A stretch of DNA of 64,000 nt from the NCBI GenBank assembly GCA_038496445.1, contig JALMLS010000612.1, forward strand, positions 760,998-824,997, written 5' to 3'. This DNA is from Trichosphaerium sp. ATCC 40318 (Eukaryota > Protista > Tubulinea). The position numbers were made by a program, and so were the translations under genes. Shown one piece after another: positions 59,323 to 64,000 of the stretch (its first letter is position 1; the number at the start of each line of letters is the position of its first letter). A model generated the notes under the pieces. That model did not search any database and was not told the origin of the DNA. It saw only the letters and a program-made list of their open reading frames with translations.

Positions 59323-62307
59323 TTAATTCTTCACTTGTGATTCATCTGTTTGTTCTTTTGTATTATCTTCAGTTTGAGTAGTGGCTTCTCCTTCGGCCTT
59401 TGGTTGATCATCTTTCGATGCTTCAGTTCCATTTTGAGCTTTCTTTGTATCTTCATCACCATTTTCTTGCTCAATAGGTTTTGGCACTGGTTTTTTTCTT
59501 TCAGGGTGTTTTACTTTTGTTAGTTTAGGACTCTTTAAAGAAAATTTAAGTCCAGATCTATCATAAGTAGGTGGTGGACTCCACCACCCATAAACAGACC
59601 TATGAAAGAGTTAATCATACATGAGGTAACTGTTTATGTATCTACTCGTACCCAATTAATGGAATAGTACGCATAACGCCATCAACGTATGTTTCGTACT
59701 CTTCTTGACCTTGAACCTGTTTTTGAGCTTTCTCTGCTTGTTTAATACTTTCTGATAGAATATCACCAATAGTTGCAAGCAGCTATACATCCAAGTAAGT
59801 AAAAAACCAAAGGCACTAAAATAGTTTCATACTGGGCTCTTTTTCTCAAGTTCTACAGCTGTATCTCGGATTAAATTAACGTGGTACTCTACTTTTTCTT
59901 TTGTCAAAGGACTTGTATCCTAACGTAAGAATGAAAGGTTAATAAAACTGATCAATGAAGAAAAAAAATCCTCAAAATGCGTACAAGTGCTAATGCAATA
60001 ACAACATCTCCACGAAGATCTTTTGTTTGTGTATAGATTTGATGAGATTCAGACAAATGCTTGCATATCGATTCATTAAGAGTATTCACATCTGCTGCAA
60101 GTTTTTTAGGCATAGCCTCATCGCCTGTCATTACAAGTGAAGGTACATATCTAAAATCAAATACCACGTGAGATGATAAAATAGGTGAAAAAAAAAATCA
60201 CGGGAAGAAAAAAACCAAAAAAAACAAGACGTACCGTACAGCACCAAGTCCAACAAAGTTAGGTAATTGTACGTTGTGTAAGTCCTCTTCATTTTCAACA
60301 AGTTTTTTGAAAACAGGTTGGAGTGTATAAGCGTTTTCAATTAATCCGACTTCTGTACTTAATTTTGAAATATAGCTATCAATCAGTGCTACGGTCATTT
60401 GTGGGATATTACAGCTTGCAAGTGGATGGTATCGAATGCATTGATGACCCTTGAATCTAACTAGTTCAAGATCCAAATCAATAGCTGATGTATGGTTCAT
60501 GTCATGTAGGATTTGTTCGTTTATGGCATCCAAAATGTTCTGAGGGTTCTTTGCAGTGACAGATGATCCTGTAGGTTGATAGCGGAATAACACTTGCATA
60601 GAAAAAGGTGGAGATTCAGTGATAATATGAGGGACATTTTGTAGCTTATTATAAAGATGTGAGACCTACAAAAAGGAGTTAAGATAGAAATAATGTTGAA
60701 AGGGCAAAATAAGAAAAACAAAACGCTTACCAATCGCTTTGATACTTGCATACACTCACGGAAGTGGCTAAGTCCATTACGTTGTAATACTAACCACAAT
60801 GGTAAAGAAATCAACCCATGATCTATGAGTGTATCGACAGGCATGTTAGAGTCATCAATTGCGTTTTGAACAACTGGTTCTGGTGCTTGAACTTGTTCAT
60901 GTCTATGATTCAAATCTGATCTATAGAACACTGTTGTGATCTCGTAAGACGTTGATTGAAAAAACAATGCCGAATTGAAAACAAAACTATTTGCACTTCG
61001 TATTGCAGTTAAAATATCAGGACAATCAGGGCTACTTAGTAAAATAGCGCCTTCACTAAAAAAATATTATTACAATGTAAGAAAAAAAGAAGAAAAATAA
61101 TGTCATGTTTTTGACATTTGACACTTGACACTTACCCTTCAACATGAAGCCATAATTCTTGTCGTTTAGCTATATCACTGTATTTTTTTATGTCATCTGC
61201 GTCACCTCCAATTTCTGAACCGCTACGTGCTACTACAGCAAAAGGTGTATTGTCGCTTTCGTCTCTTAGCTTGGCGAGATCCTAGAAAAAAATTACATGA
61301 CAAAAAACTTCGCAAAACATCTTTTTTTTGATCAACTTCAAAAAAAACCACTGTACCTCTGTAAGCTCTTCTGGGCTCGAAATAAAACGTAAAGAATTCA
61401 AAGGTAATCCTAAGTTTGTTATCAGAACGTATTTGAACAATGTTTAATTCCACAGCATACCAAGAAGATAAAGAGCGTGATTTAATTCCTGTCCTTTCCA
61501 CGCTAAAAAAAAACCAAGTTAACACATAAAATACAGGAAATCTCTGAAGACATACTAGTATACACTATAGGTAGCTTCCCCTTAAACGAACGGAATCCTA
61601 AAGTTCCATGGCTTGCGAATTTTGCACCTAACGCTTCGCGTAATGCCGACACACGAGCATCTTGCATAGTTCGTGTGTACATACCTAGGGTATAATTTAG
61701 CATTCACAAAAAGAGAAGTACTGATAATGTTTTTTTGAAATATTTTCTTACCGCTCATTGCTGGTGGCAGGTTGAGGATAAAGTGGATCCAATTAATTGT
61801 TTGGCCATTTACAATCGAAGCGAACTGGTTTAACTGCGCGCTGCTCATATTTATGCGTAAATAAGCGACAAATGCCTCAGATAGTGCAATGGCGTCAGAT
61901 TGGTCATGGGTGCTACGCAAGGTTATTACAAGCGTGTTTTATAAACGTCAAACAAGATAGCGAACTAAAAAGAAAATGTACCCATCATTTAATAACGAGT
62001 CTCCTGAGGCGATTTTTGTAATATTTACGAGTCTATCTAGCACTTCCTAGCGTGAGTGTCACGTCAATCAAACAAAACAACGGAAGTGGCTGATTCTTTT
62101 GTGTGGGCATTACTTACCTTTATATCTACACTCTCTAACGCTGGTTGAGCTTTTAATTGTGATTTGCTGTAATGTTGTTAAAATCACTACCAGTCGCGAT
62201 GACACATACCTAGCAACATTTCCCTCACTAAGAATGTGCTTTTTGAAGTAATCAAAATAATTATGTAAACCTCCTACGTCTTGTGTGGGTTCCTGCTGTT
62301 CTGCCAT
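59323..62307 (-). CDS. PDXDC1: Pyridoxal-dependent decarboxylase domain-containing protein 1-like
   Basis: WLHVEG, LPLWLVLQ, GLGAVRYVP and C-terminal GVMRTIPLIGSVYGWWSPP. Confidence 0.8.
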
Positions 62308-62415
62308 GATGGTGTGAGGTGTTTGTCAATTTTCACAACAGGCGACGTGTCGCTAACCTCGCTTAGGGTTTGTACAAATAAGTTACACCAACTGTTGATA
62401 CCTCTCAAACTTGGA

Positions 62416-62811
62416 ATGTCAGGCGGTATACCACGTAATCTTGCCCTGGGTGGCGCTGTGATTGTAGGTATAGGTAGCGGTACGTATGAACGTAACAACG
62501 AAACGTATTATGTAAACTTACAAAAATAATAGCTATTTATGCGTACATTCCAATGTTCGAACGTGTTAGGTGCGTAATTGAGCGAAATTATAACTAAATA
62601 AAACAATAGAAACGAGAGAATAGCAGGTGGTTTTATTATACCGCCTGAAACCAAACAAGAGGATCCAAACGTGGCAGAATCAAACATACCAGAACAACAG
62701 GACTTGACACAATTAACAGCACCGCCATCAACACCACTAAGCAGAGCACAGCGACGAGAACGAGACCTGGCACGATTAAGAGAACGCCGACCACCAACAA
62801 GAACCTTTTAG
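62416..62811 (+). CDS. Small single-TM protein, PIGBOS1-like N-terminus (three exons)
   Basis: Spliced MSGGIPRNLALGGAVIVGIGSAIYAYIPMFERVRNERIAGGFIIPPETK...RPPTRTF*, with GT-AG introns at about 62480-62532 and 62570-62609. Confidence 0.6.
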
Positions 62812-62825
62812 TACGCAAGTGCAAT

Positions 62826-64000
62826 TTATTTCCTTATTAATGGTAATACAAAGAAGAAGAACGATAACAGCATTGCTACGATTGCAACAACATATGTGGC
62901 AAGGACATCTGGTTGAAACAAGTAAAAACCGGCCTAAAAATTGAGTGTCACGTGTAGGTATTTATAAAAAAAAATCCACGTACACCTTCCAGTTTTATGA
63001 AAGCTGGTATTTTTTTGACCACGTGCGCATCCAAAGGAGGCCAGTATCTGTACAAAGAATAAGTATAAAAAAGTTTCACTGAGAATGGTTTTTGTTTAAT
63101 GTCAACATACTCAGTTGGTCCCACAACGAGCCATCCTAGACAGAAGTATAAGCAAGTTTTTAATTGTCACAACGTCAAAAAAAAATACGTACTGGATCCA
63201 CCTTTACGTGTAACAGCTCTTTTGCCTGATGTATCCTCAAAAGAAGCTAAGGCACGAACTTGTAGCGCTTCGTCCTCTTCACCATGTGTAAGCATACTAT
63301 TTAAATAATTGCGTCATCGTACCGCCAAGCAAGTAAGCAGTTCGGATACCAGCTGGAATACTCTCTCCAGGTTTCAAGAAGAAATTGGCTTCGCCTTTAA
63401 CAAGTCTGGAATGGCCAAGTTGTATTTTTCCTGAGAATTAGTGAGTTTTTGAAATAGTTGAAACTATGTACCAGTTTCTGGATCTACAGGATTTACGATA
63501 ATACAGTATTGACGCTTTGTTAAAGATGTAATGGCGATTGTACGAACCAACTAACAGAAGTATTAAAAGGCTGTAAAGGAAAAAACCAGAAGTGAGTTCT
63601 GCTTATGCCGATTTTCTTTGAAACTAACCTGCTCATTAACACCAACAATATGGGTTTCTTTACTTTCGTTTGTAATCAGCCATTCATCACCAGGTTGATG
63701 CTCTTTAAAAATATCAGTAAGGTACTTATGCCAATCGACATCAAGCTTACCGTTTCCAAATTCATCAACAAATCGGTTGTTTGCTCTCATGTGTAGAGCA
63801 ATCTTTTCTGTTAGAACTTGAGCTTTTACTGTCCTTACAACGACTTCATCGACAGCCGGCAGATAAGCACCGGTAGCTTTAAAGAGCCACTCTTCACCAG
63901 CCTTACGTTCGTTACCATCTCGGTCTACGAATTGTTTTCTAGCACGCAAATGGATGGCTACGAATTAGGTTATAAAACAACTTACGTAATTCATCTCCCG
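62826..64000 (-). CDS. Major-vault-protein repeat protein with a C-terminal TM anchor (5' part outside window)
   Basis: MVP repeats AIHLRA...RKAGEEWL...[24 protein letters not shown] and WLVVGPTEY. Ends [26 protein letters not shown]. Confidence 0.82.

Follow-up and report, generated by a model that had tools for sequence, protein, structure and literature searches.

Introduction

Few particles of eukaryotic cells are as large or as abundant as vaults, whose function is unsettled. Closure and assembly of the vault require the shoulder domain of MVP and the coiled coil of its cap helix. We know of no assembly formed by the repeats R1-R7 alone.

An earlier survey of MVP (PMC3762200) treated only full-length alpha and beta forms in Amoebozoa. 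Shorter forms appear in a study published in J Biol Chem in 2025 (PMC12547018), where one column of Table S3 is headed "MVPshort (truncated MVP homolog)". Its entries include D. discoideum XP_640422.1 (DDB_G0282033), which covers residues 6-414 of TbMVP1, the Mastigamoeba proteins MBAL_000468 and MBAL_014565, and a Diplonema entry covering residues 4-393. Its authors raise the quality of the genomes as a possible reason for truncations, and neither "membrane" nor "transmembrane" occurs in their text. Our literature search found no description of a membrane-anchored MVP; the co-occurrences that it returned concerned PARP16 and vault PARP.

Here we analyze a gene for such a short form. It lies at the end of the window (the whole stretch of DNA that was analyzed, 64 kb in length, with a G+C content of 36.9%). 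Taken as a whole, the explanation that we hold to be likely is a short MVP paralog made of R1-R7 and a tail anchor, probably of the endoplasmic reticulum (ER), that acts as a membrane-fixed vault wall.

Results

Gene structure

The minus strand from 63957 to 62826 can be read as eight exons of an MVP-like gene, which join into an uninterrupted frame of 248 residues. The seven introns are all of the GT..AG type and measure 48, 78, 41, 46, 57, 63, and 50 nt (range 41-78). The features of the gene are as follows.

63751..63957, minus strand: exon 1 in the window, repeat R4 with the beginning of R5 (Pfam Vault 1.5e-20; PDB MVP residues 173-238)
63629..63702, minus strand: exon 2, R5 (gene model; joints 63702/63751 and 63550/63629 in X2, X1, and X5)
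63472..63550, minus strand: exon 3, R5/R6 (gene model and contig joints)
63323..63430, minus strand: exon 4, R6 (gene model and contig joints; weak Vault_2 match)
63193..63276, minus strand: exon 5, R7 (Pfam Vault 3.4e-06; contig joints)
63111..63135, minus strand: exon 6, 25 nt, WLVVGPT motif (gene model and contig joints)
62984..63047, minus strand: exon 7, end of R7 (gene model and contig joints)
62826..62933, minus strand: last exon, with the first R8 strand AGFYLFQPD, the putative membrane segment, RK, and the stop codon (joint 62933/62984 in X2, X1, and X5; 62826-62853 outside the contigs)
62835..62906, minus strand: predicted transmembrane tail anchor, 24 residues (Kyte-Doolittle hydropathy)
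62825..62830, minus strand: AATAAA hexamer over the stop codon, possible polyadenylation signal (read from the sequence)

The smallest exon, 63135-63111, codes for RWLVVGPT and part of the following E. The reading frame is closed by a TAA at 62828-62826. If the AATAAA hexamer over this stop codon were used, the 3' UTR of the MVP-like gene would be very short, which is possible. An alternative donor for the last intron (GAAG/GTGTAC) was considered and rejected, as it leads into a frame rich in cysteine that resembles no relative.

Contigs of four public runs were aligned to positions 60501-64000; three of the runs, X2, X1, and X5, come from separate studies. The label of these runs as RNA is a guess, though contigs without introns are hard to account for otherwise. 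One contig in each of X2, X1, and X5 omits exactly all seven modeled introns (CT..AC ends on the plus strand), and the MVP-like gene is thus transcribed and spliced as modeled. The last intron (62934-62983), on which the reading of the tail rests, is among those confirmed by the spliced contigs.

The contig match ends at 63958, and about 590-600 nt of upstream mRNA continue beyond the window. In reverse complement, the first 30 of these upstream letters read ...IKAVVLQPNE, in frame with AIHLRARK. Positions 63958-64000 are therefore intronic, with the N-terminal repeats located outside the window. We rejected the reading of this stretch as an exon, in either the REMNY or the GDEL frame, because it offers no in-frame GT..AG intron and the contigs put the upstream exon outside the window; the range given in an earlier note on this DNA, made from the letters alone, runs on to 64000 and is corrected on this point. 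The length of the upstream mRNA fits an MVP-like protein of about 430 aa. Within the explanation favored here as a whole, the expressed gene encodes a short MVP paralog and probably has its 3' two thirds in the window.

A contig of X10, from a differently labeled organism, covers 62925-63228. It skips intron 5, keeps introns 6 and 7, and differs by two substitutions and by two small indels inside introns. Partial splicing of a transcript from another strain may account for it.

Vault repeats and hydrophobic tail

The repeats belong to MVP, as the earlier note had proposed. The Pfam Vault profile PF01505 matches the 70-aa exon at 1.5e-20 and a later exon at 3.4e-06, and PF17794 matches the 36-aa exon of the window weakly (0.17). 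Compared with the MVP chains in the PDB, the 70-aa exon aligns to residues 173-238 with an E value of about 1e-33, which identifies the repeats in the window as R4 to R7. The first strand of R8 follows and reads AGFYLFQPD in the window protein versus IPLDENEGIYVQD in mammals.

The MVP part of the ORF ends within this strand; R8, R9, the shoulder, and the cap are absent. The truncation before shoulder and cap described in the earlier note is thus correct in kind, and its extent was underestimated, since R8 and R9 are missing as well. In tblastn with 21 full-length MVPs, matches are confined to 63300-63958, with query residues up to about 450, and no shoulder or cap coding was found in the other 62.8 kb of the 64-kb window. 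The window protein lacks the shoulder domain PF11978 and the preceding R8-R9, which mark a vault-forming MVP. The coiled coil of the cap helix is absent too, as just two residues follow the hydrophobic helix. With neither shoulder nor cap helix, the short MVP paralog cannot close a vault alone.

The tail itself consists of 24 residues with a mean Kyte-Doolittle value of 2.63. It ends two residues before the stop codon, so that the protein ends in LIRK. The best 19-residue stretch within the tail reaches 2.91 versus at most 0.93 elsewhere in the 248 aa, a view of signal peptides and second segments that covers the part encoded in the window, the N-terminal third lying outside. Tail-anchored proteins have a single hydrophobic helix no more than about 30-40 residues from the C-terminus, and the window protein has such a segment. 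The order given in the earlier note (MVP repeats, a hydrophobic helix, RK, and a stop at 62826) is what the sequence reads, with a tail of 24 residues. These features support an MVP paralog that ends in a tail-anchor-like segment. Of the membrane-tethered paralog that had been put forward, the real, spliced, and expressed gene with its tail-anchor-like segment stands, and the tethering itself is a prediction from that segment.

Related proteins

A search with the 70-aa exon against 1.8 billion representative proteins gave 517 matches. Many of the best matches are 380-460 aa long and have an ending like that of the window protein. Among all proteins fetched, we collected as the family those 52 that are 300-560 aa long and have the layout of repeats followed by an anchor. 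The earlier note had suggested looking in proteomes for MVP repeats with a C-terminal transmembrane segment and no shoulder, and these 52 relatives have that layout. Their common end consists of the motif W..GP.EYWPP, about 20 residues, the motif E.L.LY.F.P, about 20 hydrophobic residues, and a short end. P0034 (52% identity) and P0014 (50%) come nearest to the window protein, and their alignments reach into the tail. Outside the tail, the maximum 19-residue hydropathy in the 52 relatives has a median of 1.2, and two of the 52 reach 1.6.

The named sources among the 52 are all amoebozoan and span Tubulinea, Discosea, and Evosea. They are Nolandella, Flabellula (two), Rhizamoeba, Pyxidicula, Amoeba proteus (two), Dracoamoeba, Gocevia, Pellita, Paramoeba atlantica, Balamuthia, Mastigella, Heterostelium (XP_020437864.1), Acytostelium, and Tieghemostelium. 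P0105 from Ceratiomyxa is a short relative without the full hydrophobic tail and stands outside the 52. Most members of the family are complete ORFs in transcriptome assemblies. P0118 is an intronless ORF of 391 aa on a contig of 35 kb (locus L001), and the truncation there is consequently no splicing artefact.

The family members examined carry PF01505 and PF17794, both strong where scanned, and never PF17795, PF17796, or PF11978. Full-length MVPs additionally carry these three domains. An unrooted maximum-likelihood tree was calculated for 63 sequences from the region common to all. It places the 21 full-length MVPs on one side of a branch (SH-aLRT 99) and every short form on the other, which shows that the short forms did not arise independently through recent truncation of local full-length genes. 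The window protein groups with members from Tubulinea in a supported clade (95). Being unrooted, the tree gives no date of origin for the short forms; their separate position would leave room for a membrane-bound form that dates back to the amoebozoan ancestor or earlier. A profile search started from an alignment returned so many full-length MVPs that it told nothing new about the short forms, and a search of a protein atlas returned generic MVP clusters only. The "short MVP forms" of Naegleria in PMC12547018 were considered as members of the same family and rejected, as they cover residues 12-754.

Three proteins deserve separate mention. In P0309 (463 aa), a tail-anchored short MVP nearest the dictyostelid members, a CUE ubiquitin-binding domain (residues 27-67; Pfam 25 bits, cut-off 21.1) precedes the repeats; judged by this domain match, the protein is a single hint towards ER quality control. 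P0313 (524 aa), the family member from Balamuthia mandrillaris, is named "Membrane protein involved in colicin uptake" at NCBI, and this name is misleading, being inherited from bacterial TolA-like matches. P0270 (884 aa), from a metagenome bin of a Xenococcaceae cyanobacterium, is a full-length MVP-like protein with a shoulder domain that scores as high as animal MVPs. It agrees with the cyanobacterial MVP homologs discussed in PMC3762200.

Structural model of a family member

We modeled P0156 (439 aa; about 50% identical to the window protein) using AlphaFold2 with the family alignment as input. The model has a mean pLDDT of 92.1 and consists of beta repeats, a last short strand at residues 411-413, and a helix at residues 416-438. 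The repeat stack and the helix are just 2-3 residues apart. In the model, this short linker suggests that the stack would be held close to the membrane with no flexible tether.

Foldseek with this model returned the crystal structures of murine MVP R1-R7 (3GNG and 3GF5) first, with an E value of 3e-42 and a TM score of 0.93 (by target). The rmsd to murine R1-R7 is 2.1-2.4 Å over about 395 columns, with 48% identity. The next matches are whole vault shells. Over R1-R7, P0156 is 46-49% identical to mammalian MVP, and such high conservation argues that the wall surface itself is under selection.

Membrane

In 19 of the 52 family members, at least nine residues follow the hydrophobic helix. An end in D/E-L is found in 14 of these 19 long-ended members versus none of the 33 short-ended ones and 6 of 355 other MVP-family proteins. 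These ends include KDEL, KQEL, KTEL, QNEL, NTEL, and KSDL. A KDEL-type end functions solely in the lumen of the secretory pathway, and such an end is unusual on a tail-anchored protein. For the long-ended members, the KDEL-like ends thus point to repeats in the cytosol, a C-terminus in the ER lumen, and residence in the ER. Judged from these sequence features, the membrane of the family is most likely that of the ER.

The window protein has neither a lumenal extension nor a KDEL-like tetrapeptide and ends in RK. The length and hydrophobicity of its helix make the ER our best guess for this copy as well, and other organelles are possible. The same protein might be anchored in the mitochondrial outer membrane, the peroxisome, or a lipid droplet, or paralogs might differ in organelle. 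The RK straight after the helix and the missing D/E-L end of the window copy favor such a non-ER membrane, and a basic C-terminal flank can favor mitochondria or peroxisomes in other organisms. However, a long and very hydrophobic helix (24 residues, Kyte-Doolittle 2.63) favors the ER in the systems studied, and the relatives with long extensions bear KDEL-like ends. We therefore consider a membrane other than the ER unlikely, though of all alternatives to the ER-anchored paralog it survives best.

The hydrophobic end could instead be a buried or oligomerizing helix of a soluble short MVP that has no anchor. Four short relatives (P0007, P0012, P0035, and P0105) could be read in this way: they end in LE.LGLY.FFFW and a few basic residues, without the full hydrophobic segment. 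P0130 ends likewise, and these relatives could form a tail-less subgroup or be incomplete models. Against this, the tail is kept in length (about 20-24 residues) and hydrophobicity and not in sequence, the typical pattern of a membrane helix, and KDEL-like ends are sensible only with the C-terminus across a membrane. A soluble protein is thus very improbable, and the tail is treated below as a putative anchor.

Convergent gene and 3' end

A small gene on the plus strand converges on the MVP-like gene.

62416..62811, plus strand: convergent small gene, about 100 aa, with one hydrophobic segment (GT..AG joints; translation)
62416-62479, 62533-62569, and 62610-62808, plus strand: coding exons of the convergent gene, with the stop codon at 62809-62811 (contigs and translation)
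62811..62853, plus strand: intron of the convergent gene starting inside its stop codon (alternative acceptor 62811-62856; contig joints)

In the contigs, the coding exons are joined at 62479/80-62531/32 and 62567/70-62606/09, both GT..AG on the plus strand. These joints and the stop codon bear out the convergent gene that the earlier note had seen ending 14 bp away. The stop-codon intron has the joint 62810/62854 in X1 and 62810/62857 in X2, again both GT..AG on the plus strand. The intron interrupts the stop codon at its donor site (TTT TA/GTACGC), and either acceptor, giving an intron of 43 or 46 nt, re-forms a TAA. The 3' UTR of the convergent gene and the last exon of the MVP-like gene overlap in antisense. 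The convergent protein of about 100 aa has a glycine-rich hydrophobic segment and a charged tail. A further spliced gene lies on the minus strand at 61054-62316. Its CT..AC joints are located at about 61281-61355, 61682-61748, and 61913-61981, its start is near 62307 (MAEQQEP...), and its 5' end adjoins that of the convergent gene.

The unstranded assemblies merged the transcripts of the MVP-like gene and the convergent gene. By depth arithmetic, the contigs of X1 and X2 skip 62811-62853, where they follow the 3' UTR intron of the convergent gene, so that the genome alone gives the last nine codons and the stop codon of the MVP-like gene. The earlier note had proposed an RNA check of the last exon; the joint of the last intron is present in X2, X1, and X5, and these final codons lie outside the contigs. 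We attribute the gap to the trimming of short dead ends by the assembler. If the mRNA of the MVP-like gene used the 62854/62810 joint instead, its last nine codons would be replaced by about 60 further, mostly hydrophobic residues. A joint of this type is carried by the sole contigs that cross there in X1 and X2. It is, however, GT..AG on the plus strand and CT..AC on the minus strand and so belongs to the convergent gene, and the contig that carries it runs on into the plus-spliced exons of that gene. Assemblers, it would seem, often trim short ends of mRNAs. Moreover, 0-4 residues separate the helix from the end in family members, which matches the genomic reading, and the roughly 60 added residues resemble no relative. 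Such a splice is hardly credible, and the protein is best read from the genome, with its end at LIRK.

The least plausible account of all is that of a decaying truncated pseudogene, or of an MVP gene with its shoulder and cap exons further downstream, for which the truncation itself speaks and nothing more: the frame is intact over eight exons, the spliced transcripts of three studies answer the earlier note's concern about an unexpressed pseudogene, the repeats-then-anchor layout is kept in relatives, and onward exons, which that note too had thought unlikely, are opposed by an expressed convergent gene 14 bp away and by the tblastn result with 21 full-length MVPs, which leaves no match outside 63300-63958.

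Discussion

The ER-anchored short paralog would work as follows. The protein would be a rigid stack of the MVP repeats R1-R7 (R4-R7 in the window) and the first strand of R8. The stack would be followed, after 2-3 residues, by a single C-terminal transmembrane helix, and two residues beyond this helix the protein would end. By analogy with other tail-anchored proteins, it would be made in the cytosol and inserted post-translationally. Once inserted, the protein would have its repeats facing the cytosol and its C-terminus beyond the membrane. The most likely role would be that of a membrane-fixed copy of the vault wall, binding what the wall binds. Alternatively, the protein might pack beside full-length MVP and hold vaults or half-vaults at the ER. 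For the window copy, we infer membrane insertion, this topology, the ER location, and any contact with vaults.

Specific docking of vaults by a tail-anchored short MVP is a doubtful proposition, and we would put it forward tentatively. The membrane-bound repeat lattice that the earlier note had offered as another possibility is likewise a hypothesis. There is a slim chance that short MVPs, alone or with full-length MVP, form an open repeat barrel on the ER. The free R1 rim of such a barrel could pair with a half-vault, and docked vaults would then enclose a patch of ER. If this were true, the family would be the missing physical link between vaults and membranes.

The family is predicted to be a natural and conserved half of the vault wall on a membrane, probably the ER. 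It would show MVP repeats in use outside closed vaults, which bears on the evolution of the particle from membrane-associated SPFH/TolA-like relatives. The family is found in relatives of Dictyostelium, and the published table lists D. discoideum itself (PMC12547018). It may thus give a direct experimental handle on vaults, their partners, and vault RNA.

Judged by the coverage given in the table, the MVPshort entries of PMC12547018 have the same extent as the short family. Canonical MVP from rat, human, and Dictyostelium (PDB IDs: 4V60, 7PKZ, and 9BW5) has the same repeat fold in the same order. In comparison with it, the short form is without R8-R9 (Vault_3 and Vault_4), the shoulder PF11978, the cap helix, and the cap ring, and it gains a predicted C-terminal transmembrane helix. 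The classical tail-anchored proteins (Sec61 beta, cytochrome b5, and PARP16; GET/TRC40) have no sequence relation to the short MVP. They share with it a single hydrophobic helix at the extreme C-terminus and a functional domain that is cytosolic, as predicted here for the repeats, and they likewise have a short or absent lumenal end. The architecture of the repeat stack is closest to that of the recombinant murine MVP R1-R7 (PDB IDs: 3GF5, 3GNF, and 3GNG), which has nearly the same boundaries as the natural short form. The murine R1-R7 is a laboratory construct, whereas the short form described here is a natural protein to which a putative membrane helix has been added.
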